Shown one piece after another: positions 22,931 to 63,816 of a stretch of 64,000 bases of DNA. This stretch comes from Haliotis rufescens (lineage: Eukaryota), in the NCBI RefSeq assembly GCF_023055435.1, contig NW_025964223.1, forward strand, positions 49,042,001 to 49,106,000. Direction: 5' to 3'. Every line of letters begins with the position of its first letter. Position 1 is the first letter of the stretch. Below the pieces are notes generated by a model, which saw nothing but the letters and a program-made list of their open reading frames with translations, was not told the origin of the DNA and made no database searches. The translations under genes were made by a program, and so were the position numbers.

Positions 22931-25900
22931 TCAGCATGTGGGTTGTAACATTTCCAGTATGCTTTGATTGCCATTACTTTGCGCATACTCAATAGGTGAT
23001 TGTCCGTGGCTATTCTGAGCATGAGCATCAAATCCACGACTAAGGAGTTCACCTACAATTTTGAGATTGTCATCTTTTGATATACATGCAAAGTGGAGAC
23101 ATGTTGACATGTCCCCACTTCTCAAATTTAGATCTGCTCCTTTGCTCAACATCCAATCAAACAGTGCTTTATGACCATTCTTGCAAGCTATCATGACTGG
23201 AGTCTGGCCAAGATCATCTCTCAGATTGATGTCGACTCCTGACTGGAGTAGAAATCCTGCCATGGAACAATGTCCTCCTAATTGTGCAACAACATGTAAA
23301 CAAGAACTTCCATCTGCTGTTTTCTCATTCACATCAGCACCTCGCTCCGTCAAGAGATTGACAATGTGCGTTAGATATTTGTGATTGCTGGCAGCTACCA
23401 TAAGGGGTGTTTTTCCTAGTTTGTCCTTACTGTCTGGGGATAGACCAAGGTCCAGTAGCATTGATGCAGCATGTATGTTGCCGCTCAATGCAGCATCGTG
23501 AAGACACGACGAGCCTGTATTATCTAGGGCGTTGATATCAGCCCCATATGAAACAAGAAGATAAATCACTTTAGGAGAATCAGCTTGAGTAGCATAAAAG
23601 AGAGGTGTTCTTCCACTATCATCTTCATCATTTACTCCAAAGCACGCCAGGGCCAGAAGTCTTTCGACAACATTCTCGTTGCCGCCTTTACAGGCAATAT
23701 GCAGGTATGTTTGATTCAAGTCATTTCTATCATAAGTATCAACATCCAGTTTTAAAAGATACTCAACAATGTGGAGGTGTCCTTTGAGACAAGCATTTCT
23801 TAGAGGTGTTGCGCCATTTGTTGCTTTTCTATTAATATCCAGATCTGTGCTGTGTTGGAGTAAGTATTCCAATATGTCCAGATGTCCAGATAGGCAGGAC
23901 GCATGGATACACGTGCGGCCCATATTGTCACTGCAATTTATGTTTGCCCCCTTCTCAAAAAGAAACTTGACAGTTTCCACGTTTCGTTTACATGCTGCAA
24001 TCAAAGGAGTCCATTTATTTCTGGTCAAACAGTTTATATCCTGTCCAGTCGCCAAGCATTTCTCAATCAGGGGAATGTTGCCTGCACTCGCAGCAAAATA
24101 AATGCACGTAGAATCACCTTTGTCCTTCAGTGATATCTTTGCTCCATGATTTAGTAAGACATCTGCTGTGTCTCTAAAGCCATTGATCAAAGCTAACATT
24201 AGGGGTGTTCTATCATAATCAGACAATGGGTCAACCTCCAACCCCATACTTAACAACCATTCGACAACACGAGTGTGTCCCTGCATAGCTGCTACATGGA
24301 GACAAGTTAGCTTATTATCATCTGCAACGTCTCGTTTAGCTCCTTGACTGACAAGCTCCATTGCAGATTCAAGACTTCCATTTCTACAGGCAAAGATGAT
24401 TGCAGTTCTTCCTCGTCCACCTCCTGCCTCAATGTTCATTCTCCCGTTTTTCAACAAAATCTTTACAATATCTATCTCGTTCTTAACACATGCCAAATGT
24501 AAACTGTTGTCCTTGTTTGCAAATGTTGACAGATCTGGTTCTGGTGTAGCTCCGCTCTCTAGCAGGAAAGTAACAGCATCGGCTTGTCCATAGTAGGATG
24601 CATACATTAAAGGTGTTCTTTCATGTTCACCATGACTGTTCAAGTCCATCTTTAGTGAACAGAATATTTCAATGGTATCCTTGAACCCTCCTCTTGCTGC
24701 TAGATGGAGGCAATTGTCCCCTTCTTGGTCTTGCAATGATGGATCAGCTCCCTTTTCAAGCAGCACTTGAACCAGCTTTATATGACCCCTGTAAGTTGCA
24801 TACATAAGTGCAGTCATAGAGTTTCCCCCACGTATGTCAACCTCTGTTCCAAGCTTTATCAGTTCCATCACGATCTCAGTATGACCATTTGCTGCAGCAA
24901 TATGGATACATTTATCTCGGCTATTGCCATGCATGCGGGGTGTTTCTTTCTCATGTGTTTTTTTAAGTTCTAATTGACTAAACGTATTTGAGAGACTCCA
25001 GTCATATTGCTTTCTTTCTGCCTGATAGTCAGCAATATCTCCAACACAAATTCCTTTTATTTCGTCAAGACATGGGTCAGGATACTGCATCAAAAATTTG
25101 AATGAATCTATTGTTCCACTCATGCAACATCCAACATATCCCTCCAGTAGTTCTTGAGTGCTGAATTTTGTAGATTTGAGGGCTCGTTTACAAACAGAAT
25201 TAACACCTGAGAATGTTGTCCAAAAAAGAAATCCTAAGCCATGATCAGTATCTTTGCCATGTAGGACATCTTCTAGATCTTTGTCAAGTTGTTGAAACAG
25301 TTGATTAGCAATGTTTTCCAAGAGGAGTGATGGATGTGAGAGTGGCGGTGCAAGGTTAACAGAAACCAGTTCATGTACAAGGCGCGCAATAAGTACACGC
25401 ATGCCAGACACGTCAAGGTAAATATTGAAGTCATAGTTGGTGCCACCACTAGGCTTAGAACTGGATCCATGCATGTCAACTTTCACCCTTTCCAATATGA
25501 ACTGAATGCTACAATGTCTCACCACAAACACAGGGTTGTGATATCCCACCACATAGGCAACTGCATCGTTAATAGTCGGATGATCGAACTTGGTGATGTC
25601 CCCACCAGAAAGAAGCATTCCAATTTGACTTCGGGCAGCAATGTTCACTTTCACCGGCAGAGAATCTGAATAGGTAAGATGAGGAAGAGTTGTGCAAACC
25701 TTTTTCAGCATTTCCTGAAGTATGGCATGTCCACTTGCTTGGCTGTCCACAAGATCAATAAGGTTCAGACTTCCATCATTCAGCATCATGAGAAGGAACA
25801 CAGCTGTTGTGCTGGTTTCTTCACAAATCTCTGTAAGCACCTGGACAAGATATGCCAATGGTTGCTGAAAAAACTGTATTGCTGATATTTTGGTCCAACG

Positions 25901-26586
25901 ATTTTTCCCGTAGAGCTCACAAATATGTGGAAAACCTAAGAGGTTGTATTCTAAATTTGAGATTGCTCTGATGTCTTCATCTTTAAGAAATAGACTGGAC
26001 AGTTCTAAATGTTTTCTCAGTATCCTTTCTTTCTCTTCTGCGTCAAGTTTGGTAAGAGACATTAACCTAGCTACTGTACTTGGCCTGAACAATGAGCTTT
26101 GATATTTCCTGATTTTTGGTTCAACTTCATTAAAGATGTTAGTTCTACTATTGAAAACAATTTTCAAAAGCCTTTCGTGCTGTTTGTTCTCTAAATGTTC
26201 GTCTTTTCCCGCCCTTTTAGGGGAGTTTTCTCTGTTTCTCTGATATTTAAAATGAGATTCAAGATCATTAAAGAGCTTTCTACAAAGGACAAACTCAGCT
26301 GTTGTTGGAGAGAAATGGCCAAAAAGATCATCAAATATCAGCAAGGTATGCCTTTTCAGACTTATGTCTTTAAAATCAAAATCTGAAAGACTTTCAATAA
26401 ATCTGATATCATACTCTTTCAATCTGTACTTCTCCATCAACATGAGTGACATCACTGTCTTTCCTGATCCCGGAGACCCACAGATGGTCACAACACCCTC
26501 AGAAGACAATGTCGAAGAAACATAGTTGTAACCTTTCGTCTGCACAAAAGTCTGCTTGGCATTTGCCATTTTCTCTCTGACAATTT
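22931..26586 (-). CDS. NLR-like STAND NTPase (nSTAND3-like) + ~20 ankyrin repeats, copy A, main terminal exon
   Basis: Uninterrupted ORF with Walker A GSPGSGKT, Walker B LLIFDDLFG, sensor-like NSR, GFP motif and serial TPL/LHxA ankyrin repeats. Acceptor tattacag| in phase 1. The spliced model with the three exons below gives 1413 aa. Confidence 0.93.
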
Positions 26587-26789
26587 CTGTAATACAAAAA
26601 AACACTGATACAGTCTAGCCATATATTGTTTGTAATTGTAATATAAAGTGGGCGGCAAAAGAAAGTATAGGTCGAGTTCCATGATCGATAAAAAATAACA
26701 AGAAGAGGTTTTGTTGTGAATGTTCCCTGCTGTTGGTTTTGTAAGAATGGAAGCACAACTGGCTGCAACACTTGGTCTCTGTACTACAC

Positions 26790-27650
26790 AGCGTTCAGGT
26801 TTCCCTGCATATTCACCAAATCAGTCTTCTGATCTCCACAAATACCGCCCCACACCATGACACATCCCCGCCAAATGGATGGACCTCTCGAATACACGCC
26901 GGAGCCAAACGTTCCCCTCTGCGTCGATAAACTCGTTCTCTGCCGTCATTTCGAAACAAGTTAAACCGACTTTCATCAGTAAGCAGCACTCGACGCCAAT
27001 TTCTCACTTGCCAGCGTCGAACCTGCCTCGCCCATCGCAGTCTCAGGCGTCGATGTTGAGCAGTCACTACCATACCTCGGAAAGGACGATACGCTCGGAT
27101 TCCAGCAGCACGAAGTCGTCGTAGTACTGTACGTTGGCTAATGGGATGTCCCAACGCTGTTGCTGCCGTCGCCGTCGCCGTCGCCGTTACGAATCTGTTT
27201 CGCAGGTGAATGAGCCGTATCTGACCCTCTTCCAGTGGTGTTGTCACTCGGGGTCGTCCGGTTCTAGGCCTGTCCAGTGTCCAACCTCTCTGCCTGTTCC
27301 GTTGAATCAGCTACTGTCAATGGTGTACAACCAAACCTTCTGGCAATTTGGACCTGTGTTGCCCCCATTTCGGCCATACCGATGGCTCCCTCTCTCTCTG
27401 CTCCTGTGACAGTCGTGGCATTTCTTTTGTGTGCTTTCATCACTTGTGGTTATACCCTGCAGACGAAACCTGTTTCATCATTTTTTTGTCACCGCACGAG
27501 CGCCGTCAAAGGGGGCGCGTTCGGGTGAGTTGTTTTTTGGTACCTGTTCCTGGGCAGTCATATTCCCAGTACCCACTTTCCACTAGTTATCGCTGTTTTT
27601 AGGGAAATTACAAATTGTCAAACTATCCTTTCTTTTGCCGCTTTGTTTAG
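26790..27650 (-). mobile_element. Tc1/mariner remnant in an intron of copy A
   Basis: ISQRTVLRRLRAAGIRAYRP...WRRVLLTDESRFNLFRNDGRERVYRRRGER covers the HTH region and the first catalytic Asp. Confidence 0.9.
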
Positions 27651-39431: not shown

Positions 39432-42400
39432 TCATATTTGAGACAAATAATCACCAAGTTCACAATGTCCATGAGTTTCAGCATGACTGATACAATCATG
39501 GCCATTCAGGTCAATTGCTTTTCGGTTCGCTCCTGCACTTATCAATAAGTCTACCACTGCCCGATTTCCTTGTCTTGCAGCACACATCAATGGCGTCACA
39601 CCAAGCGTATTCGGAGCATTGACATGGAGACCCCTTTCAAGGAGCAGTTTGTGTGTCTCTATGCTGATATCTTGGATATCACATGCATAATGCAGCAAAT
39701 TAGACTTGGTGCCACTGCTGTCCAATGTACTGACAGAAGCATTTCGGGACAGCAAGAGGCTCAAAATGTTCACGTTGTCCTTGCTGATGGCATACATGAC
39801 TGGGGTCATGTTGTCATCATCCTCTTTATCAATATTTAGTCCATGATCAAGTAATTCATTTGGAATATGTGTGTCATTGGTGTCTGACATGCATGCTAAA
39901 TGCAAACAACTGGCGCCATGATCGGTTAAGCAGTGCAGATCAGCACCTTTAACAAGCAGTAGGTCAAATTGCTCCTTGTTACCACTCCTGCAAGCAGACA
40001 TGATTGGAGTATAGTCATGTGAACCTTTGGTGTTGATATCCAAACCACTGTCCAAAAGATATTCTGAGGTGGCAGTGTGACCACCAGATTTTGCGGCAAT
40101 GTGCAGGCACACGTCACCATTTTCATCGCTCACGTTGATGTCTGCGTCTCTTTCAACAAGAATGTTGACAACTTCACTTCGATCATCTCTGTTCTTGGAT
40201 ACACACATGAGAGGGGTTCTGTTGGTAGAATCACGAATATCAACAAACATGCCCAAATCAAGGAGTTTGGCACAACCCAATGCATTTCCAAACCATGCTG
40301 AAGTGTGGAGGGTTGTTTGCCCATGATTGTTTCGAATATTCATGTTTGCACCATGTTCAACAAGGAAGTCAACCATATCAAAGCATTTGGATTTAACTGC
40401 AAACATCAAGGGTGTCATGCCATTGCAGTCAATGTCATCAATGGGAATTATCTCCAACAACCGCTCTGCTATTTCCACGTGGCCACTGCGACATGCCACA
40501 TGAAGACACGTCTGTTCGAACTTATCTTTTGCTAAGATGTCTGCACCTTTTGACTGCAAATACTCCACAATATCAGTGTGACCATGAAAACATGCTGTCA
40601 TAACCGGTGTTCTATTTTTTGGGCCGCATTTGTTGATGTCTATTTTTGGAAAAGTTGATATAAGATACTCAACCATTTCAAGGCTACCCCCAATGCAAGC
40701 AGCATTAAGGCAACCATTTCCCAAATTGACATTGGCGTCTTTCGCCACCAAACATTTAACAAGGTTCAAATCCCCTTGTTTGCAAGCACGCATGACTGGG
40801 GTTTGGTAACTATTTGAACATGAGTTGACATTTTGACCTTTTTCCAGGCAAAGTTCAACCAAAGGCAATCTCCCGGATTGTACAGCCATATGCACACATG
40901 AGACCATTGAATGATCTTTTAGAGCTATGTCAGAACCATGTTCAATAAGCCAGTCTACCATGTCAGCATGGCCATTCTGCAATGCAAACATCAAAGGTGT
41001 TCGCCCTGTATCATTAGTACAATCAACAACGATTCCTGGATTTAAGGAAAGGAGCCATTCAGCTGTGGGAACATGCCCTTTCATCGCTGCAAGATGTAGG
41101 CAAGAAAAGCTTGTTTCATCCAAGACACTGGTATTTGCATGCCTGGCTACTAGTTTCTTGGCAGTTTCAAACTGCCCATTCCTGCAAGCATACATCAATG
41201 GGGTTCTGTTTCGCTGACCCGTCACTTCAATGTCCATTTTGCCTTCATCAAGAAGAATCTGAACAATTCTTATTTCACCCTTCACACATGCAAGATGAAG
41301 ACAGTTGTCTTTTTGGTCAATAGATGATACATCAGGATTTGGCAATGCTCCCTTCTCCAATAAGAGCTTCACAATATCCTCATGCCCATTGTATGAGGCA
41401 TACATCAGTGGCGTGCGTCCATGTTCACCACGTTTGTTGACATCCAACGTTTCTGCAATTAGGGATTTAGCTAAGTCAACAGACCCCCCTCGACATGTAA
41501 GGTGAAGGCAGTTGTCACCTTCTTCGTCCAACAATTCCGGATTGGCCCCTCGTTTGAGCAATGTTACAGCTAAGTCAGTATGACCAAGGTAGCTTGAATA
41601 CATGAGTGCTGTCATGTCATTGCCTCCCTTGACGTCAATTGGTGTACAAACCGTATCAAGGAGTAGTTCTACAATTTGAGTGAATCCATTTGCAGCTGCA
41701 ATATGAATCAACTTATCTTTGTTGTCCCCATGCATGCGGGGGGTTACTTTCTCGGGACCTACATCAGTTTTAGTGGGGCTGCATGCTGTGGATAGGCTGC
41801 GTACAAATTGCCTTGTTTCTTTTCTTATACCCAGGATATCCCCAACACTGACTGTTGCTATTTGGTCATAAAAAAAATCTGATTTAGCAACAAGTACCTG
41901 CAGAGAAGAAACATTCCCACTCAAGCAACAACCTAGATATCCTTCAAGGATTTCAGAAACTTCAAATGAAGTATGCTGAAACAAAGATTTGCTCACAGGA
42001 CCAATGCTAGCAAACGATGACCAGTATAAGAATCCAAGGCCATAACCCCTGTCATGGGAATGCAAAACTCCTTCAAAGTTCTCACGTCTTGAAAGATTTG
42101 AAAATAGACAGTCCACCATGCTTTCTAACATGAGACACTGATGTGACAAAGAAAGAGCAATATGACCATCAGTAATCTCCCGAGCAAGTCTCTCCACAAG
42201 CACCATGGCAGCATCTTGTTTAAGGTATATCATGAAGCTGGTGACATACCCACCACTGGGAGCCTCAGTCATGTAGTCTTCTGAAACCTTTGTCCTTTCA
42301 ATGATGAACTTGAGACTGCAGTTTTCAAGAATGAAGACAGGGTTCATGTCCCCCACAACAAATGACACAACATCATGGATAGTCGGATGACTAAACTTGA

Positions 42401-43390
42401 TGCAGTTTTTGTCAGATACCAAAAGCGTACGAATTTCGTTTTTGGCAGCTTCGCTTAAACGATGAGGATGAAGAATATCCGGCAGTATTTCTTGTACACT
42501 GGATAGCTTCTTCTCAAGTCCACTACTTTTTCGCTTTTCAGCACTCAACAAATTGATCAAGTTCAGTGTTCCATCATTGAGCACCATAAGCAGGAGCACA
42601 GCTGCTCCGTAGTTTGGATCCTCGGAGATGAATATGTTGCTTATTAAGTCATGTAAATACGTCCAGGGCTCCTTGAAGAATTGCACGGCCTATTCCTGTG
42701 AAGACCAATTGTCCACAAACAACTGACAGATATATGGAAATCCCAGTGTCCTGTATTTTAAATGTGCGATGTGTTCTACATCGACAGAAGTAACGCTTAT
42801 GCACCCTTTTCTCACATGTTTGCGAAGTATGTTTTCTTTTTCACGATCTTTCAACTCTGTTATGGTTAGATCGGCAATAGTGCTGAATCTAAACAAGGAT
42901 GTTCTGTATTTCTGTAACATCGTGGAGACAATGGGGTGTTTGGAAATGTTTGTCCTACTGCACATGATAATTTTGAGATTTCCTGAGATGTCATCACTTT
43001 TATATTTATCTCCAATTTGTCTTTTAGTCCTCTTTTCATCTAACCGTTTGAAGTGTGTTTCCAAATAATTGAATATATTTGTACAGCGAACCCTAATTTC
43101 TGATGTTGGAGAAAATCTACCAAACACGTCATCAAGAACAAGCAATGTTGGTTCACTCAAATTGACGTATTCTTCAACTTTAAAACTTGTCACTTCATCC
43201 ACAAATTTCACCTTGTATTTCTGCTTTCTGTATGTACCCATTATGTAAAGAGCCATAGTTGTTTTTCCTGATCCCGGTGATCCAGTAATGAGAACATGTC
43301 CATGGTGAGCCAGAGCATCACAAACATTCAGGTAAGCATCCGTTTTTACAAAGATGTCTTTTGCAGATTTCAACCTCTCATTAACCATAT
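39432..43390 (-). pseudogene. NLR-like STAND NTPase + ~23 ankyrin repeats, copy B, main exon with a single in-frame TAG (42690-42692)
   Basis: ORFs 42690..43388 and 39432..42686 are in the same frame (NWSSQE*AVQFF). GSPGSGKT, LLVLDDVFG and LGFP are present, and the exon is otherwise intact. Could be a null allele, recoded, or a consensus error. Confidence 0.85.
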
Positions 43391-43552: not shown

Positions 43553-43645
43553 CTGGAAGTTCACCATCACCGCTGACAGTTGTCCCTTGTGAAATGTTCA
43601 GGTTGCCAATAAAGTTCACAATGTTCAAATTTTCAAAATGTACAC
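43553..43645 (-). CDS. Copy B coding exon 3 (93 nt), amyloid-like motif
   Basis: gttttag| ... ccag|gtatac, phase 1-1. Encodes GVHFENLNIVNFIGNLNISQGTTVSGDGELP. Same length and phase as 63349-63441. Confidence 0.8.
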
Positions 43646-44339
43646 CTAAAACAGAAAATACAAGAGAAAACAATTATTCATTCAAAAACATCAGGATTGT
43701 TATTCATGTGTACACGGATAATCAATATACGTAATATGTTATATGTTCCTGGTAAACAATTGTAAAATGTCATATCTTAAGCTGCCATTGCTGACCCTAC
43801 TTTTCGTGTATTTTCGTGTATTTTGTATGCAACACTCACCATCGGGAATTGACGCCAATGAGCATTCTGCCAGTGGTTGCTGTATTTCTGAAAATCAAAT
43901 AATGTTGTAAATCGTCTGACATAGACCCAATATACGCAACCAGAAAGGCTGCCGGATCTCAAAGTTGACAACGTATCAGTGATACTGTTACAGAGGTAAA
44001 CAATTTCCATAAAAAATAATAATGAAGAGTCCATTGCACGAGCCCGACTATATCATGAGTATGTGTCAGTGCATCACTATCAAATTTGCTGTTGAAAAGA
44101 TTGGGATAAAGTTTCATGAACACTATACACTTCCCACTATACAAGCGTACATATACAAAAATAACGAAGCGTAGAAAGACGCGTTGAGATATTTTAAATG
44201 ACATATTATTTGACTGTATCATGAAAATAGGACGAAGCTAATTATATCTCTTGGTGATATGTTCATATTTCATATTAACTGAACAAAAAGCAAACATTAA
44301 TTCAATCCTCAGTGTGTGATAAACTGTTTCTACAAGAAC

Positions 44340-44487
44340 CTTCACGGTTGATCTCTCGAGGCCCAATGTTCTCGACATATGTTATCCTCCGTCGTACAGG
44401 GTGTGCTGTATCCTCTGACTGACCATTGTCTGTTTGAGATAGCATGACTGACCCTCCAGTTGTGTCTTCATATCCTGAAGGTTGATC
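44340..44487 (-). CDS. Copy B coding exon 2 (148 nt)
   Basis: tcctgcag| DQPSGYEDTT...YVENIGPREINRE, phase 0-1. The end is homologous to copy C's EQKIGPPQITHP. The donor gttctt is weak. Confidence 0.7.
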
Positions 44488-44514
44488 CTGCAGGATAAAA
44501 GTAGCACACGTTAA

Positions 44515-44790
44515 TGGTTGGTTGGTTGGTTGGTTTGTTGTTTAATGCCGCACTCAGCAATATTCCAGCTATATGACGGCGGTCTGTAAATAATCGAGTC
44601 TGGACCAGACAATCCAGTGATTAATATCATGAGCATCGATCCATGCAATTGGGATCGATGACATGCATCAACCAAGTCACCTTGCCTGACCACCCGATCC
44701 CGTTAGTCGCCTTTTACGACAAGCATAGTCACCTTGTACGGCAAGCATGGGTTGCTGAAGACCTATTCTACCCCGGAATCTTCACGGGTC
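44515..44790 (-). mobile_element. SINE family B, near full length, intronic
   Basis: Head cccgtgaagattccggggtagaatagg on the minus strand, tail plus (aacc)n. Confidence 0.9.
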
Positions 44791-47600: not shown

Positions 47601-49417
47601 TAGGAAGACAGCCGAGTTCTAATTGTGGCAGATTAATCGTGAGTGTGTAGAATTTTCGGTAACAACCGAAAACAGTGGTTAATCCTTTTTCTCCCATAAC
47701 AATACGCCATAAAAAGTCGAGCTCGTAGTTGAAGATTTCCCGTGTTTAGAAACCACTCGGGATTTCCCCCAGCCTCGTTTTCGAATATGCTCAGTAAGAC
47801 AACTGCACCATAAACAGGTAAAAAGGATCTCGCGCAGACAACCCACACGAGTTTTCCCGTGACAGGCAAGCCACTTGTTAGCATTCATGTTATGTTTTTC
47901 GTTAACTATTAACAGCTGATTGGAGTAACGTTTTGAGAATTAGTAAAGTGATTTGATATTGTTAATGGTTCTGGATTACTCGGCCCATAACTTTATTTGT
48001 ATTTGTCTCGCCGTGACTATCATTCTCAATGCGCAACACTAAATAGGCCCACCTTTTTAGTGTATGTAAATACGTTATTCGTTTATTTGTCCGCTAGAAA
48101 CAAATGTTATAAACCCAATTAAGAGGAAATTAAATATTCTCTTAAATATTGTGAAATATTGTTAACGGAAAACAAGGGCCCAAGGAACTGTCAGCAGGAT
48201 TGATCAGGCACGATTCTATTAATACCAACTCAGGCATCTGATCAGCTGATTACTGCTAGGTAAATCTTCTCAAATCCATCAATGGATTGTAATATTTTTT
48301 AACGAATTTTCCTCTTTAAAACTAATTTTGCAGTGAATAATTTGATAGGTAAAATGATGATTATTTCATGTCATCTTTTTTTTGTTTTTTTGTTGTTCCT
48401 TAACATGGTGAGCACATGTGTTTTTATCATATAAAAGAAATAAACTTATTCAGTGGACAAATTTTCTTTTGAACATAATATTTAACATCAAAACATGTGA
48501 ATGACAAGGAACAATGTGAATTTGACAAGCACAATACTTTATTGTGTGTGAAAAATAAATACATAGGATGTATGTAAACAATAAATTATCATTTCAATAG
48601 TTTTCAATAGTTTGAGTTTCAATATTTGCCTTTTAATACCCTTGTAATGTTACATTGTTTTTTTTACTGCAACAGTTACCTCCAAATTTTATTCTTTCTT
48701 ATTTTATCAGAAATAAAGACTTACTGGTGATAGGTAATTTAAAATTAACATTTTCTTCTTTTTATCTTCATGAAAACAAGACTCATAATAAATATATATT
48801 TTAGTGACCTGTTCATATATGAATTTTTGTAAAAAGTATTAAAATTAAAATAAGACATTGCTAATGTTAAGAAATGAGGTTTATGGTGAAATATTATAAG
48901 ACGACCTCTTGTTGGTCATTTCTGTCATCACCCATAAATTTGAGTTTTTCTTTACTTACCATGTTCTGAAAATTTACACATTACACATTAGAATAATTTA
49001 AGGTCTCTGATTAAAATAACGCAACATCTTTCCACTCTCAGGCAGCCAATTAGATTATGTGAAAAAAATAAACCACTGTAAACCTTCTAATGGGAGAAAC
49101 AATAATATTCCTCATGATGAGAGATAATGTGAATTTTGTTGAAAGAAAATTGTCGTTTGTGAAAGATTAATACAATGTGATTATATGCGAACGCTGCTCC
49201 CGTCAAGAAACATATGCATCCATATTACACAGACTATAATAATTATCAACCTCATGATATCAACTGACAGACTTTCTATATATAATCGGAACGATATTTA
49301 GCTAAAGTTTTTTTAATGCAAAACGAGACAAAACTGATATAATATAAACACCCGTGTATGCAGGATATGAAGTTTTAAATGGTATTGTTATGTGTGCCGA
49401 TGACCTTTATTACTGAA

Positions 49418-49558
49418 NNNNNNNNNNNNNNNNNNNNNNNNNNNNNNNNNNNNNNNNNNNNNNNNNNNNNNNNNNNNNNNNNNNNNNNNNNNNNNNNNNN
49501 NNNNNNNNNNNNNNNNNNNNNNNNNNNNNNNNNNNNNNNNNNNNNNNNNNNNNNNNNN
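49418..49558. other. Assembly gap (141 N)
   Basis: Run of N. Confidence 1.
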
Positions 49559-51359
49559 GACCTCCAAGTCACGATATTATTTCATAGGTCGTTGTATTGT
49601 TATTAAATGATAACATAAATGGTCAATGCAATAATCTGTCTATATTATCCACCGAAATGATAAGATATACTTACAGTGGATGTATGCAGCGGATATAAAC
49701 CCATCTAGCTATCATAGGTCTACCAGAGAAACACAACTGCACTGACAACAACGAGAATACACAGTCTGTCCGTCAGACGCAGTTCGCGGAAATGAGACCT
49801 GCTTTCGTTGAAATACCAGGTTACCTTGACCTAAAAGTCACATAAATCGCTGCGGTTAAACAGCGCAGTGACACCATGTCAATGCCGACCTGACACCTCG
49901 AGCGTGACATATACTAGGCTGTTAATATAATAGATGCGTTTAGAGATGAACAGATTCTCGCTGTATATAACGGACACCCTATGATACCGAAATAAAATAC
50001 CGACGATAAATGTCGTAACGTAATACCACTAGTGCTATGGACATGCACATCTGACGATGTGTACATATTATACAGTTCAATGACGACATCAGCACGAGCA
50101 TCGTTCAGGTAAGAGCATCTTCTCATTTGGATATGTTTCAATTCCAAAAGGAATTAGATGTTCATAGTGCATGCGTGTAAATTGTGTTTGTGGTATTTTG
50201 GGTCTCTCCGCTTTGTAACACATGTAGGATTTAAGTATGAATTTGAAAGATTTTTTTCGAATATCCTTGTTAGTTACCGCATGGTCATTAATGTCTGTGT
50301 GATCGTGTACGGCATGGCGTCTGCAATGTAGGAATATAATGGGCAGGGGGGGAGGAAAAGGTTTTCTTTCGAGACAATATATTTCGTAGTAATTAAATTC
50401 GACATAGATGATCGACTGTCAGAATTTCTTTCGAAATCAAGATAAATATCTATTTTTTCATCATAAACTGAAACTGAATTTAACATGAGCTGTGCGAGGA
50501 ACACGGGCAGTAAACATTCGTCAACATGTCAGCTATATCGCCGCTTGGGCACCAGCAATCCTATTACTGTCACGCAAGCATGGATGCGCTCGGGCTATGA
50601 CAGTGTTTTCTAAGCTGTAGGTCTACTCATCACCTTAATAAAGTCGTGAAATTTGGATAATGCACATTATTAAGACCGTTGTTTCTTGACGTGATAATGA
50701 CAGCCAGAATCAAAATAAACCTTGCACATATCATAATGTGTTATACCAACTACCAGTTAATGATCCTTCCTTTGGGAATTTATGCATATATGATTCATAA
50801 CGTATTTGTAACTTTTCTTACCTCTGTTCAGACAATTCCTTCCTGTATTTTTCGCTGAAGACGATTCTAGATGTTTATATTGAATGCTGCACACGGCTGT
50901 GGGGGAACCCCGCTTGGGAAATTTACATTATACTGAGCATGCGCCACAGTCGATCACATGACCAGTGTGTACGAAGTGACAGTTAAATGGCAACAGCAAC
51001 CGTGAAACATTCAGGGATGTTGTGCACCCTATTAGTATTACATACTTTTAAAAGCAGTTGAAATCACTTGCATAACGGGTGTTATATTGTCCGTATATCA
51101 AAATAAACGCATTGTTTTACATTATGCTAAATTTTAAAACTCTGTATCCTATCTTTACATACATCTATACACCTTATTCTATATTTGGGGTTTATATATT
51201 TCATTTGGAAAATATTTTGTAAATACTGAAAAACAGATTTTACGAAAAGTGATTTCCCCCCAAAATGATTGTTTATTGATTGCCCAGAAAAATGTGTTGT
51301 GTGTTTTCAAATAAATTGTTTGACGCCTCCCTCTTTGAGAAAAGATTTCTTCTTGGTGG

Positions 51360-55949: not shown

Positions 55950-57945
55950 TTCTTGGTATTATTTTAAATGTACATTAGGTATTATTAAATAGGTATTATT
56001 GACCTTAAATATATGTATAGTGCAAAGGATGTACAAGAAAGTAATAAAAATAGTCAATTAATTCTTAAGAAGTATCTCCATTTCTTTTCAAACATATTCA
56101 ATTTATTGATTCTTCTTTTAATAAGCTTTCAACAGCAAATACCTCTTTCAGGATAGTTATAAAACACTGTAATTCAAGTTGTTTGTTTTTTATACTTGAT
56201 AAATAAATATGTCATTTTGCTAAAATTATGACACGGTTTAAAAGTTTGTCACCTGATACTGAACCAATAAAAACTTATATTTCATCTGGGATTATTGGAT
56301 GATCATAAATTTGAATCCATATACTCATAAGTCTAGCCAAAATTTTCTTACTTGAACACTTGTGTTCTGAGATAGAGGATAGTATTAGAAAAGATTTCCA
56401 AAACACCAATGAAAATAAATTAAATGAATTAAGCCAGTTGAAAAATAAATTTGAAAAAATTAAAGAAGAAGAAATTCAAAGAATTAATATAAGAAATAGA
56501 ATTAACTGGTATGATGAGGGCGAAAAACCAACAAAAAATGTTTGTAAATTAAAAACTAGAGTTTATACTTTTAAAACAAATTATTCAATGTTAAATGATG
56601 ATGGAGACATAATAACTAACTGTAAACAAATAATTGATTGAAGAACAAAAACAATTCTACCATTCACTTTATTCAATATCATCTGAGGTTGAACATAACG
56701 ACTTAAGAGACCTTGAAGATATAATCACTCCCGAATTTGATAATGAAATGTTTGATGAACTTGAATTACCCTTACAAAAAAAATAATAGCAGAAGTAGTT
56801 CATAAAATGAAAAATAATAAATCCCCAGGTATAGATGGGTTCTCAGTTGAATTTTTAAAACTTTTCTGGAAAAATATCTCTGTTAGGGTTTAAAGATTTA
56901 CAAAGGATACCTTTGTGAAAATATTAGGCTATATTATAATACGTCGGGAATCGAACCCGGGTCTTCGGCGTGACGAGCGAACGCTTTAACCACTAGGCTA
57001 CCCGACCGCCCCATATAAAAATAAAGGAATCAGACTAAATGATAATGAATAAAAATTGATCAATATGCTGATGATACAGATTTTGTTTAGATGGATCTGA
57101 ACAAAGTTTATGTAATGCAGTCGATTAAGTCGATGGCAGGCAGTGATATTAAACGACCTTTGGGTAATTAATACCCATAAGACACTAGAAAATATAAAAC
57201 GATTATTAGCAAACTGGAGAAAAAGAAACTTAACTTTAATTAGTAAAATAACAGTAGTTAAATCATTAGCAATGTCAACATTAATCCATATCTTTAAAGC
57301 TCTTCCCAATCCACCTGAAGATTTTATGAATGCCTTAACATAATATTTTATGATTTCATTTGGAATAATAAAAAGGATAAGATAAAAAGATCAATATTGA
57401 CAAATATATATTAAATGGTGGTTTAAGAATGATTGATAGTAGTAAATTCAATAACGCTTTAAAACTTTCATCACTTAAGAAATATATAAATAAACAAAAG
57501 TATAGCAACCCAAGCAATTTCCACCTGATAGATGTTCTACAACTTGGTGCTAATGTTAAAGACTATTTCAACATTGAAAATCCTTTTTGGAAAGATGTGT
57601 TGACAGCTTGGTCAAATATTATAAATGTTTTGTCATTAGTGATGAATAGTGTGATATATTGTCACAACCGCTGTGGCTTAACCCTAAATGTTTTTATTTC
57701 GTGTAACACATCTCCTTTAAGAATTTATAGGAAATGGGAAGATGTATTAGAACAGACTATTCAATTGAACAAAGTTTTTTTTATATATATTTACACATTG
57801 TACCAAAGATATAAAAGTGTAAGATTTTCATTATAGATTTTTGCATAGGGCAATTAAAACTAAGAAAGAATTACTAAAAATGAAATTAGTTGACGATGAT
57901 ATTTGTTGCTTTTGTCAATCTAGTAAAGAAATGTTACAACATATA
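55950..57945 (+). mobile_element. L1/Tx1-clade LINE remnant with an internal inversion
   Basis: Plus strand 56360-57945 reads RNRINWYDEGEKPTK, KNNKSPGIDGFSVEF, QYADDT, WRKRNLTLISKITVVKSL and C.FC...E...H. The continuation (VQVRKFW) lies on the minus strand, left of 56360. A SINE A fragment is inserted at 56944-57012. Confidence 0.8.
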
Positions 57946-59172: not shown

Positions 59173-62100
59173 TCAATACCTATCGTATCTTCTTCTTGAT
59201 TGATTGGCCAGGTACTTAGCCAATTCATGATGACCTTGCCTTTTAGCATACCAGACACAATTTCTGCCATTCTTATCAACCTTTCTTGGATCAGCTCTTG
59301 AATTTAACAGTAGATCTACAACAGCCCGATTTCCTTGTTTTGCTGCAAGCATCAATGGCGTCTCGCAGTAGTACATGTTAGCTTCATTTACACCTCTTTT
59401 CTTAAGCAGTAACTCTATTTTCTCTGTGATCATGCCTTGAAGGTTGCATGCATAATATAGCAAACTGGTCTGATTTCCTCTTTTATCAAATGCAGTGAGC
59501 GATGCATTCCGTGCCAAAAGGAGTCCCAAGATGTGGACGCTGCCTTTGCTGATGGCATACATAGCTGGAGTTTTGTTCTGTTCGTCTTGTGCATTGATGT
59601 CAGCCCGACGATCAAGTAGTTCATTAACAATGTGAGCATCATCGGTGTTGGCCATGCATGCCAAATGTAGACAACTTGCTCCATTAGCATTTGTGAGATG
59701 AAGCTGAGCTCCGTTGGCTAGGTATAAGTCAAAGGCTACTGTATTGCCACTTCTGCATGCAAACATGATGGGAGTGTGATCATAAGCGCCTAGCGTATTG
59801 ACATTCATATCCCTATCTAGTATATACTTTGCAAATGCTGGATGACCATCCGATTTAGCTGAAACATGCAATACTGTATTATCATCCTGATCTCTCACAT
59901 TTATATCTGCTCCTCTTTCAACTAGAAGTTTTGCAATTACTGTGCAATCTTTCTTGTTTTTAGCAAGAGTCATCAGGGGGGTTCTGTTTATAGAATCAAG
60001 AACATCCACATCCATGCCAAGATCAAGAAGTTTAGCACATGCATTTCTATTCCCAAACCAGCAAGCTGTATGGATATTGGTTTGTCCATGACTGTCTTTT
60101 GTATGAATGTTTGCACCATTTCGTACGAGGCAACCTATCAAGTCAGGGGAGTCAGACCTTACTGCATACATGAGAGGTGATATCCTGTTTGCATCAAGGG
60201 CATCGATACGCAGAAGTTTTACCAGCTTTTCAACAAGCTGTAAGTTGGCACTCTTTCGACAGGCTGCATGAAGACACGTTTCTTTAAATTCATCTTTACA
60301 CGTCATATCTGCACCACAAGACTGCAAATATTCCACAATGTCAATGTACCCGTGAAAACAGGCTGTCATGACAGCTGTTCTGTTCTTTGGTCCACGTTCA
60401 TTGATGTCTATATCTTGGCCATATGACACAAGATATTTGACCATTTCAAGACAGTTCTCGGTACATGCGGCGTATAGGCAACCACCTCCAAAGTTGACTT
60501 TGGCTCCTCTCGCAACCAATGCTTTGACAAGATCTACCTGTCCCCCTTTACATGCCATCATGACCGGTGTCCAACCAGATTCCGTGAGCGAGTTGACATC
60601 TAGACTATTTTGGAAACAAATTGCCAACAGGTGCCACATTCCTGATTTTGCTGCCATGTGAAAACATGTAGATTTTCTATGATCTGTGATTGCAATGTTT
60701 GCGCCTTTTTCTATCAAAAAGTCAACCATTTCAGTGTGACCATTTCTCATTGCATACATCAAGGGTGTTCTCCCATCTGAATTAACACAGTCAACCTTGA
60801 GTCCAACATTCAAACCAAGGAGCAACTCAACAGTTGGTATATGTCCTTTCATCGCTGCAAGATGTAAACAATTCATATTGCCTTCGTCTAAAACATTTGC
60901 TCTGGCATTCCTGTCTACCAGTTCTTTGGCAGTTTCTAGCCGTCCATGCCTGCAAGCATACATCAGTGGTGTTCTTTTTCTTTGACCAATAACTTCAATG
61001 CCCATAGCGCCTTGATCGAGAAGGATCCGAACTACACCTGTTTCACCCGTAACACAAGCAAGGTGGAGACAATTTTCCCTTTGTACCATAGAAGATACAT
61101 CAGGCTCTGCCTCTGCTCCATTCTTCAGTAGAAAGCTCACAAGGTCACCGTAACCTTTGTACGATGCATACATCAAAGGTGTACGTGCAACTTTACCTTC
61201 TTTGTTGACATCCATATTTTTTTCAAGGAGGAGTTTTACAATAGCTATGGGTCCTCCTCGGCATGCAAGATGAAGACAGTTATCGCCTTCTTCATTCAGC
61301 AGTTCCAGGTCAGCCTGTCTTTGGAGAAGGATTTCTGCTAACTCCTTGTGTCCAAGGTGGCAAGCATACATAATTGCAGTCATGTCATTTCCTCCTCGAA
61401 CATCAATATGTATACCAACACGATCGAGCAGTAGTTCTACTATTGCAGTGAATCCATACGCAGTTGCTATATGAATTAGTTTATCTTTGTTGTCACCATG
61501 CGATCGAGGTGTTTCAATATCAGATGGCACTTCTGTTTTGGTAGGGCTGCAAGCTGTAGATAAGGAGCGAACTAGCTGTCTTGTTTCTTGTTTGATACCG
61601 AAGATGTCTCCAACATCAGTGGAGGCAACTTTGTCCAATATGTCCTTTGAGTTTTCAATGAGAACTCGTAATGAAGACATGTTTCCACTCATACAGCAAC
61701 CAAGATATCCTTCACGGATTTCATGAACAGAAAATTTGGTGTGCTCAAATGACATTTTGCTTACAGGACCAGTACTGGAGAATGATGACCAGTACAAGAA
61801 GCCCATGCCATGCTGCATATCACAAGAATGCAAATATTGTTCAATGTTGCCATGTGACGAGAGATTTGTAAACAGATATTCGGCCATATCTGCTCGCGAG
61901 AAACATTGATGTGACAATGGAAGAGCAATATAACCGTCAACAATCTCTCTTGTGAGTCTTTCCACCAGCCCCACAGCAGCATCTTGTCTAAGATTTATCA
62001 TGAAGCTGTGTATATCACCACCACTTGGATGATCTGTCTTGTGGTCCTCTGAAACCTTTGTCCTTTCGATGATGAATTTGAGACTGCAGTTTTCAAGGAC

Positions 62101-63171
62101 AAAGTCGGGATTCATGTCCCCTACAACAAACGCGACAACATCATAGATAGTTGGGTGACTAAATGTCATCATGTCACCCTCAGACACCAAAAGAGTGCGA
62201 ATCTCGTTTTTGGCAGCTTCGTTTAACCGATTTGGATGAAATATATATGGCAGTATTTCCTCAACCTTTGCTATTTTGTGTCGAAGTTCAATATTCCTCC
62301 CACTTGGTCGAGCCTGTTGGAGCTGAATCAAATTCAGTGTTCCATCATTGAGGACCATAAGCATTAGCACCGCAGCTCTGTAGTTTGGGTCATCAGATGA
62401 GAATATGTTGCTTATCAAGTCATACAGATATGCCCAGGGCTCCATGAAGAATTTCACAGCAACGGCCTTTGACGAACAATTGTCTGCAAACAACTGACAG
62501 ATGTATGGAAAACCCAGTGTCTTATATTCCAATCGTGTATTGGTGTATGTCATGTTCAGTGAGATCCAATCTCGATTTGACCAAATGTTTTCGAAGTATC
62601 GATTCTTTCTCATGTTCTTTCAGCTCAGATATTTTCAGCTCAGCTATCGTGCTTTGTCTGAACAAGGATGTTTTGTATTTGTTTAACATAGTAGTGACAA
62701 TTTGATGCTTGCAAATGTTTGTCCTGCTGCTCATGATAATCTTAAGAGATATTTCAGGAGTTCCAGATGCCTCATCACCTTTAGTTTTATCCTCATCTTG
62801 TGTTTTCCTTCTCTTTTCCTCCAAACGTTTGAAATGTGTTTCCAAATAATCAAATATCTTTGTACAACGAACTTTCACTTCAGATGTAGGAGCAAAGCGA
62901 CCAAACACATCATCTAAGACAAGCAGTGTTGGAACTTTCAGATTAACATAAAGTTCAACTTTGAAACCTGCAACATCATCTATAAATTTCACATTGTATT
63001 TCTTTTTCCGGTATCTACCCATGATGTAAAGTGCCATTGTTGTTTTACCTGAACCAGGTGATCCAGAAATGAGAACATGTCCGACGTTTTCAAGAGCATC
63101 ATAAACATTTTCATAAGCTGTTGTTTTTACAAAAATGTCTTTTGCAGATTTCATTTTCTCTCTGACCATAT
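59173..63171 (-). pseudogene. NLR-like STAND NTPase + ~23 ankyrin repeats, copy C, main exon with a single frameshift (~62535-62545)
   Basis: The NTPase frame (GSPGSGKT, LLVLDDVFG) runs to HDIHQ. Homology to copy B (EHIAHLKYRTLGFP) resumes in another frame as TRLEYKTLGFP, about 2 nt short. The rest is open to 59173. Confidence 0.85.
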
Positions 63172-63348
63172 CTGCAAGGATATAATATAATGATATGAAT
63201 AAGGACAGGTACACTAATCAACTTGTAACTGTCAGTTGTATATGTTTTCTCTCTTTAAAATGATCAAATAGAGTACAGTCTATATAATGTCCGTTGTTGT
63301 ACACATATTTGTACAAATGAACATTGTGGTTTTTGAAAGTATGCACAC

Positions 63349-63441
63349 CTGGAATATCTTCCACAGCACCGTGTGAGGTCCCTGTTGCAACAATCACGTT
63401 GTCAGTGTCGTCAGTGATGTTCAACCTATCAGGGTGCGCAC
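63349..63441 (-). CDS. Copy C 93-nt exon
   Basis: ttgcag| GAHPDRLNITDDTDNVIVATGTSHGAVEDIP |gtgtgc. Positional homolog of 43553-43645. Confidence 0.8.
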
Positions 63442-63816
63442 CTGCAACGTTAAAGCAATTCCAGCTTTAAAATTTCATGACATTATTAACCAGTTTCGCA
63501 CATAGCACAAATGAATACTTTTTAAACAATTCCGCCAACATTAATTACATATCGTTGCGTCCTCACCTCACCCTTATCCCAACCCACACTTAATCCCTTA
63601 CAACATATAATACTCACCACTAGGAACCGATAACAGTGAAATGTATGCCATCTTTTGCTGAATATCAGCGAGTCAATGAAAAATTCTATTTAGATAAATA
63701 TACTGAAGTAGTACTTCACTATGTTTATTTAGAATGAAGTACATTTGAAAAATAAATGTATTTAAGTTATTGGTTGACATTGTGGTCGATGTACACACTG
63801 GCGCTTGTACACTCAC

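Follow-up and report, generated by a model that had tools for sequence, protein, structure and literature searches.

Gene B and its motif exon

The window (the whole stretch of 64,000 nucleotides of Haliotis rufescens DNA that was analysed) contains three paralogs in tandem on its minus strand, here called A, B and C, and a fourth paralog, D (L003; protein P0050), lies 18 kb beyond C. The present work centers on gene B, LOC124137098. The large 3' exon of gene B, at 39432..43390 on the minus strand (from the end of the ORF to the acceptor defined by transcript contigs), encodes an nSTAND3 NTPase, a helical region and an ankyrin array. The P-loop NTPase, at 42810..43352 on the minus strand (ORF residues 13-193), has GSPGSGKT as its Walker A sequence and LLVLDD as its Walker B sequence, and matches Pfam family PF20720 along profile positions 1-154 of 155, with a score of 70.4 bits versus a cut-off of 27.2 (E 1.7e-19). 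The ankyrin-repeat sensor region, at 39435..41700 on the same strand, matches Pfam Ank_2 in 13 stretches (E 5.7e-151); the array is C-terminal of the NTPase, in one exon and, apart from a TAG in the reference, in one reading frame. A preliminary description of this DNA had proposed an NLR-like STAND receptor lacking a folded effector. Pfam supports both parts of that proposal: the nSTAND3 P-loop NTPase is followed by ankyrin repeats, and neither Pfam nor AlphaFold2 recognises a folded effector domain N-terminal of the NTPase.

The in-frame TAG of the reference is found at 42690..42692 on the minus strand, as read in the DNA and in transcript contigs, and the RefSeq product XP_048239785.1 (P0052; isoform X2 of LOC124137098, 343 aa) ends at this codon. 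Contigs from X2, X3 and X13 have G at position 42691, which makes the codon TCG (Ser), and the X1 contig has the reference letter. Since TCG is found in three of the four transcript assemblies, the TAG is a segregating nonsense allele, and in other animals the gene codes for the full-length receptor.

Separated from the NTPase and ankyrin exon by a 162-nt intron is the upstream motif exon, 93 nt at 43553..43645 on the minus strand, which encodes residues 81-110 of P0052. As read in the DNA, the exon is bounded by a ttttag acceptor before 43645, where a polypyrimidine tract and AG precede it, and by a gtatac donor after 43553. The split codons take two 5' bases and one 3' base, which makes the exon phase 1-1, with a length divisible by three. 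In the frame from 43643 the gene B copy translates to the 30 residues VHFENLNIVNFIGNLNISQGTTVSGDGELP, opening with VHFENLNIVNFIGNLNISQG; the peptide originally reported is reproduced by this minus-strand translation of 43553-43643. The alignment of six homologous sequences, discussed below, delimits a motif core, ENLNIVNFIGNLNISQGT, at 43581..43631 on the minus strand. In the core, two short strands of the form hydrophobic-polar-hydrophobic are arranged around a G-N turn, and I-S-Q-G-T comes at the end. The NLNI pseudo-repeat noted earlier, its copies 9 residues apart, is present, and each of the six homologous exons has the hydrophobic-polar-hydrophobic pattern twice, at columns 6-8 and again at 15-17. 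An internal 27-nt duplication was considered as the origin of the repeat and rejected: DNA likeness is confined to the four NLNI codons, so that there is no clear internal duplication.

The placement of the motif just before the STAND domain is as had been described, since the next exon runs from 43390, one residue lies between the end of the motif exon and the NTPase exon, and nSTAND3 begins 13 residues into the ORF at 43388. The motif is N-terminal of the NTPase, but it starts at about residue 81, and not near the N-terminus of the protein.

Is the motif exon used? Intron-less contigs from four runs in four studies (X1, X2, X3 and X13) have joints at 43390/43553, 43645/43840 and 43887/44340, and all three joints have GT..AG on the minus strand. 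Because the contigs match gene B minus its introns, the four assemblies must derive from RNA. The motif exon is tied to both of its neighbours in all four runs, in evidence that consists of assembled contigs, raw reads aside, so that low-level exon skipping is possible. P0052, which is 100% identical to the gene B NTPase ORF, also includes the motif. With the contigs and the RefSeq model in agreement that the exon is spliced in, as predicted, the motif exon is a genuine, expressed coding exon of H. rufescens LOC124137098.

Further upstream are the exons for the tail. A small exon at 43840..43887 on the minus strand (48 nt, phase 1-1), identified by tblastn, by reading of the DNA and by the contig joints, encodes IQQPLAECSLASIPD, a peptide that is homologous by tblastn to the DILETMEQLSLSSIP segment of H. 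asinina proteins. The next coding exon, at 44340..44487 on the minus strand, encodes the acidic, G/S/D-rich tail; it was placed by the DNA, by contigs that extend to 44490 and by the N-terminus of P0052. The RefSeq start differs from an internal ATG at 44446 in this exon, and MAESGGSGPNDSDQ, seen in the N-terminus of P0052, would come from one further exon upstream of it. A whole-genome search finds the tail exon (44341-44487) to be single-copy. Just upstream of the tail exon, window positions 44508-44700 are a very high-copy repeat, where each of the four RNA assemblies reaches a summed contig depth between 8e4 and 1e6 and there are many short internal joints; this repeat is likely an expressed SINE-like element.

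The G/S/D-rich disordered tail of the preliminary description is evident in the composition of P0052 residues 1-80 and in a pLDDT below 50 for residues 1-106, residue 80 excepted. AlphaFold2 gives the NTPase of P0052 a pLDDT of mostly 80-96, leaves residues 1-79 and 81-106 below 50, and predicts the motif as coil, from a 19-sequence alignment that is shallow over the tail and for a construct of tail plus NTPase with the ankyrin part absent. Given this low pLDDT against a confident NTPase, the motif is predicted neither to lie within the NTPase fold nor to dock on it. A four-copy complex prediction of P0052 residues 76-112, run without controls, gave an ipSAE of 0.02 and no answer, an outcome that speaks on neither side of the question of binding.

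Relatives of gene B and the rate of change of the motif

At least 145 nSTAND3 NTPase exons, all paralogous, are present in the 1.33-Gb H. rufescens genome. Paralog A, at 22931..26605 on the minus strand, is an intact nSTAND3-ankyrin ORF of 1224 aa whose NTPase is 43% identical to that of B. About 200 bp separate the NTPase exon of A from an upstream HTH_Tnp_Tc3_2 fragment (Tc1/mariner-type transposase, E 7.6e-12) at 26813-27247. A scan of the whole window found no B-type motif exon for paralog A, and none was found within 8 kb upstream of three relatives at 55.0, 55.1 and 48.9 Mb. Paralog C (LOC125371595), at 59173..63214 on the minus strand, has a broken frame, with overlapping ORFs at 62522..63214 and 59173..62613; RefSeq models it as the 318-aa P0053, and the model skips the equivalent of the 48-nt exon at about 63613-63666. 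The motif exon of paralog C, located by homology and in the P0053 model at 63349..63441 on the minus strand, is 93 nt long and encodes AHPDRLNITDDTDNVIVATGTSHGAVEDIP. The motif sequence of paralog D is VNHGEINIMNVFNDVTVTRETSYGAVNEIP. In each of B, C and D, then, a 93-nt, phase 1-1 motif exon with AG/GT bounds occupies the same place. Homologous 30-residue segments, free of indels, are found in five proteins of H. rufescens, H. asinina and H. cracherodii, among them P0001 and P0002 of H. asinina and P0051 and P0056 of H. cracherodii, the motif sequences being VRPENVNVVNFIQNVNVSQGTSHGAVDDIP for H. asinina 1, EREKNLSITNLILELNVLQGTPHGGVYDIP for H. asinina 2 and SNQETVKITNIITNLNVSRGTSRGAVDDSL for H. 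cracherodii. No relatives outside Haliotis were found among proteins 0.55-1.75 times the query length, and gene B belongs to a Haliotis-specific clade of nSTAND3-ankyrin STAND NTPases.

Two minor features of the window are found between B and C. A run of N at about 49400-49560 is an assembly gap or masked sequence. A match to a tRNA model at 56943-57001 on the minus strand (29.7 bits versus a threshold of 29; model positions 7-64) is probably a tRNA-derived repeat or pseudogene.

What is preserved among the six motif sequences? The motif exon is free of indels in all six, while the upstream tail varies in length by tens of residues. Every one of the six has aliphatic residues at columns 6, 8, 15 and 17 and N or D at column 10, and hydrophobic residues occupy columns 11 and 12 in five; T21 is invariant, and G20 is found in all but D, which has E. 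The Asn columns 7, 14 and 16 and Gln 19 are variable. B and D agree at 3 of 16 core residues, yet all seven hydrophobic core positions coincide; this agreement, like the lack of indels, goes beyond chance. Conservation of the motif is therefore mixed: the pattern can be recognised in paralogs and orthologs, but the polar N/Q positions are poorly kept. That the motif is strand-prone, as had been suggested, stands; columns 6-20, a stretch of 15 residues, are uncharged in B and in H. asinina 1, and the other four sequences carry 1-4 charged residues there. Outside B, every copy preserves the block GTSxGAVxDIP well, and, because this tail is better conserved than the N-rich core in five of the six sequences, a second, different function is hinted at.

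The motif exon changes much faster than the NTPase. Identity between copies is 23-53% for the motif exon versus 65-93% for the NTPase, and H. asinina 1 and 2, with NTPases 93% identical, have motif exons that are 50% identical. Nei-Gojobori estimates of dN/dS among B, C and D are 0.5-1.6 for the whole exon and 0.9-1.3 for the core, the latter based on just about 10 synonymous sites, versus 0.2-0.4 for the NTPase. The intact D orthologs, P0050 of H. rufescens and P0056 of H. cracherodii, are 94.1% identical overall and differ at 7 of 31 motif-exon residues (30 codons plus the next, split one), as against about 1.8 predicted from the average rate. Taken together, the conservation pattern and the rate comparison show that length, phase and hydrophobic periodicity are constrained and residue identity is not: selection keeps the length and phase of the exon and the strand-turn-strand pattern h-p-h-x-N-h-h-x-p-h-p-h-x-x-G-T, and the residues themselves change fast.

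One might think that the motif exon is a spacer, a flexible linker running from the acidic tail to the NTPase, in which length and composition are kept with no specific binding role. All of the aliphatic residues have T at the second codon position, so that the alternation of Asn and hydrophobic residues could simply reflect ancestry and codon bias. A core dN/dS near 1, the low identity of the exon relative to the NTPase and the concentration of differences between the D orthologs are what a spacer would produce, as are the pLDDT below 50, the lack of a family match and the undetected B-type equivalents of A (whole window) and the three relatives (8 kb upstream). It is harder, however, to see why a spacer should have no indels in six sequences while the tail just upstream shifts by tens of residues, or why four aliphatic columns should show no second-position change in any sequence. 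The invariant T21, G20 in five of six sequences and the conserved GAVxDIP likewise argue against a spacer, as do splice sites and phase that are intact in all three genomic copies (B, C and D), and an exon in the same slot that is strongly conserved in sister subfamilies. We consider a spacer possible but rather unlikely.

The D orthologs have a second hotspot, at ankyrin residues 951-1050, with 18 differences per 100 residues versus about 6 per 100 overall; this segment is presumably the ligand-facing surface. Do the motif region and the ankyrin segment co-evolve? If so, the motif might be a docking peptide, either a short linear motif that adds a strand to a folded adaptor, or an autoinhibitory plug that sits in the ankyrin groove of its own receptor and co-evolves with the sensor. 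Ankyrin grooves commonly accept extended peptides, and the tail, disordered but with a few conserved short blocks (the motif itself, GTSxGAVxDIP and, upstream, IGPPQITDPDFQQAM..LSLxSVPxG), is of the sort that would contain a docking peptide. The coincidence of the two hotspots comes from one sequence pair, however, in the AlphaFold2 model, which covers tail and NTPase, the motif does not dock on the NTPase, and we know of no partner. A docking role seems to us unlikely.

The search for a partner, and the sister motif

What defines NLR-associated amyloid motifs is that an effector, as a rule the product of a neighbouring gene, carries a matching motif. The preliminary description envisioned such a system for gene B. 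In that scheme the motif would nucleate a cross-beta fold when the receptor oligomerises, and would convert a separate effector carrying a related motif, in the style of NWD2/HET-S or BASS/Bell. There are several likenesses to the fungal HRAM, sigma and PP motifs and the bacterial BASS1-10 motifs. In each case the receptor has no folded effector domain, and a short motif adjoins its STAND NTPase on the N-terminal side; the B motif is strand-prone, N/G-rich and low in charge, with a G-N turn, and its monomer is predicted by AlphaFold2 to be disordered; and related receptors bear different motif types. Divergence between paralogs could in addition yield orthogonal signalling pairs. To date, NLR-associated amyloid motifs have been described only in fungi, bacteria and archaea (PMC12261475).

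Is there a partner for the B motif? With the motif exons of B, C and D as protein queries against the whole 1.33-Gb genome, each matched itself only. These genome searches used single-sequence queries, along with patterns of at most 35 places. As a check of sensitivity, the same search with a 33-residue sister motif, described below, listed 33 copies, down to 45% identity and including copies in the range of 45-65%. Cross-seeding pairs of known amyloid motifs have 43-56% identity (bioRxiv 10.1101/2020.01.06.895854). Since sister copies were found down to 45%, a partner with the identity of the known pairs should have surfaced, though one of weaker likeness could escape. The degenerate pattern N-h-N-h-x-N-h-h-x-N-h-N gave six non-query matches versus three in the reversed control, and N-h-h-x-N-h-N-[IV]-x-Q-G-T gave one versus none. 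We attribute these matches to chance; all are in short, stop-ridden, non-coding frames. The H. asinina 1 sequence would satisfy both patterns.

Other searches gave a similar picture. There is no effector-like gene in the window, where a Pfam scan of ten other ORFs gave only the Tc3-type transposase HTH. When the exons of B, C and D were compared with Pfam by hmmscan, at E up to 10, no HET-s/HRAM, sigma, PP/Ses_B or RHIM family appeared; the C exon had a chance-level match to IceA2 only, and the B and D exons were empty. A phmmer search with the 30-residue exon against 1.84 billion representatives gave no match at E<=0.001, but the search is uninformative, as even the H. asinina copy would have an E of about 100 by rough estimate. 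An ESM Atlas look-up with P0001 residues 78-112 gave no usable match.

Might the motif instead be a RHIM? The preliminary description held that it is not a canonical one, and we agree: [IV]-Q-[IVLC]-G is absent, B having I-S-Q-G, with Q in the third place, and Pfam finds no RHIM. At the positions of the RHIM tetrad, the other five sequences have V-S-Q-G, V-L-Q-G, V-S-R-G, V-A-T-G and V-T-R-E. The core of the cryptic RHIM is VxxG or IxxG (PMC9387487, PMC13506858), and this loose cRHIM-type core, [IV]-x-x-G, is found in five of the six sequences. Because it fixes two residues only, and so is frequent by chance, the definition is too weak to be diagnostic. Like the RHIM and cRHIM of RIPK1/3, PGRP-LC/LE, Imd and SRB2, which serve animal innate immunity in segments of about 20-25 residues in disordered cytoplasmic tails, the abalone core ends in G after I or V (I-S-Q-G in B and V-x-x-G in four others). 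The D copy, however, has E for G, and the known signalling amyloids of animals, RHIM and cRHIM, reside on kinases, adaptors and PGRPs rather than on STAND receptors (PMC12261475, PMC13506858). A different comparison is with proteins of the ANKRD50, TANC1/2 and NPHP3 type, distant matches in which a P-loop STAND NTPase likewise precedes a long ankyrin array; unlike gene B, these belong to an NPHP3_N/NACHT-like NTPase clade and are without the N-terminal motif.

The sister motif bears on the question of a partner. Other nSTAND3 subfamilies of red abalone, with NTPases about 30% identical to that of B, carry an exon encoding PGCSVSQYDLSNSSNV-x-VG..H.GC.SQ. The sister exon is phase 1-1 and directly precedes an NTPase exon whose start has the same position relative to the P-loop. 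All 33 of the copies found are at nSTAND3 gene clusters and none is on a gene of another kind; for nearly all, a listed NTPase exon follows 0.3-9 kb downstream, and two have no such exon so near. The sister motif resembles the B type in being short and S/N/G-rich, in its [IV]-x-V-G core, in its slot and in its restriction to STAND genes. It differs in having two conserved Cys, in being much better conserved and in being accompanied by tandem arrays of exon-like units of about 60 nt. Homology of the two motif types was considered and rejected: HMM scores are 0-2 bits and the hhalign probability is 0.1, so that only slot and phase are common to them. Since the slot is filled in both the B-type and the sister subfamilies, a motif exon slot at this place is a family feature. 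Neither motif type occurs on another kind of gene, which weakens the model of a receptor/effector pair. The absence from other genes fits a module through which the receptors act on one another, or one that has a folded partner as its target.

How do these results affect the proposal that the motif templates amyloid in a partner carrying the same motif? The position of the motif, the uncharged and Asn-rich cores of B and H. asinina 1 and the loose cRHIM-type core remain in its favor. Against it, the B, C and D motifs were each found just once in the genome, in a search that reached 45-65% identity, the degenerate patterns yield only non-coding chance matches, the window is without an effector gene, and the 33 sister copies are confined to nSTAND3 clusters. 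In these respects, and in lying some 80 residues into the protein, in its poorly kept polar positions and in its fast turnover, the abalone motif departs from the fungal and bacterial amyloid motifs; residues N7, N14, N16 and Q19 vary, and the copies of C, D and H. cracherodii have 2-5 charged core residues. It also differs from the fungal motifs in having no match to Pfam models, the BASS profiles being outside the libraries compared. The search results thus fail to bear out templating to such a partner, and we judge this mechanism to be highly improbable. The motif could nonetheless be a self-association signal, though nothing here shows an amyloid that relays a signal to a partner.

A possible homotypic contact

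If there is no partner, what might the motif do? The N-terminal side of STAND/NLR NTPases holds output domains, which are gathered by oligomerisation, and a death-fold, TIR or amyloid module occupies that slot in other STAND proteins. Our preferred reading, which we offer tentatively and at less than even confidence, is that the motif acts as a beta-strand element that self-associates, set within a disordered signalling tail, and that the association is homotypic, between identical protomers. The tail would be the output side of the receptor. Binding of a ligand to the ankyrin array would trigger oligomerisation of the NTPase and crowd the tails together, whereupon the uncharged, strand-prone segments of neighbouring, identical protomers could zip into an intermolecular beta-sheet. 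Such a sheet might stabilise or extend the assembly and present the rest of the tail to downstream factors. Because a contact between identical chains matches every substitution automatically, the sequence would be free to drift between paralogs as long as strand propensity is kept, and this drift would in turn give paralog-specific assemblies.

A homotypic contact is favored over a heterotypic one because the B, C and D motifs were each found only once in the genome. Further, zipping of strands best fits the combination of a strict 30-residue frame, i/i+2 aliphatic residues around a turn, polar residues that drift, sequences that are specific to each paralog, and a single copy. Expression of the exon, the lack of a Pfam domain in the tail or motif, and the filling of the same slot in sister genes also speak for strand zipping. 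On the other side, the AlphaFold2 monomer is a coil, and the strands would be just 3-5 residues each. A dN/dS of about 1 is also expected from relaxed constraint. The C copy has four acidic core residues, although C is a broken gene, and D is without G20. The better conservation of GTSxGAVxDIP than of the N-rich core also counts against strand zipping. Of the readings weighed here, strand zipping comes first, ahead of spacer, docking peptide and templating, and about as much weight as for templating is left for explanations outside these four.

A broader proposal is that the swappable motif exons, both the B/C/D type and the Cys type, are amyloid-like polymerisation modules of the abalone nSTAND3-ankyrin receptors, acting homotypically or with a diverged partner. 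We regard this proposal as improbable, yet its consequences would be considerable. With them, NLR-associated amyloid signalling motifs would for the first time be known from an animal, and an invertebrate receptor expansion would be seen to couple sensing to output without a folded effector; being small peptides, such modules would also be convenient to assay. If the motif exons are not polymerisation modules, the checked gene model and the segregating nonsense allele remain useful, and the case becomes a caution that alternation of Asn and hydrophobic residues alone does not make an amyloid signal.

The exon and the gene are already annotated in RefSeq; the motif is undescribed, and the amyloid claim is unproven. 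What is new here is an animal STAND receptor with a short, strand-prone N-terminal module in place of a folded effector domain. In at least two nSTAND3 subfamilies of red abalone, a symmetric exon is devoted to a short, strand-prone motif.

A final observation concerns the arrays that accompany the sister motif. Arrays of units of about 57-60 nt are found upstream of the sister exon at L052, L053, L062, L067 and L073, with sites at 55.47, 59.76-59.79 and 60.38 Mb of G000:C556 and at 0.26 Mb of G000:C12. Each unit follows ...ctccag and encodes PGCSVSQYDLSNSSNV(VSL), that is, the 5' half of the sister motif exon. The arrays may be a minisatellite, or they may be a bank of alternative mini-exons.
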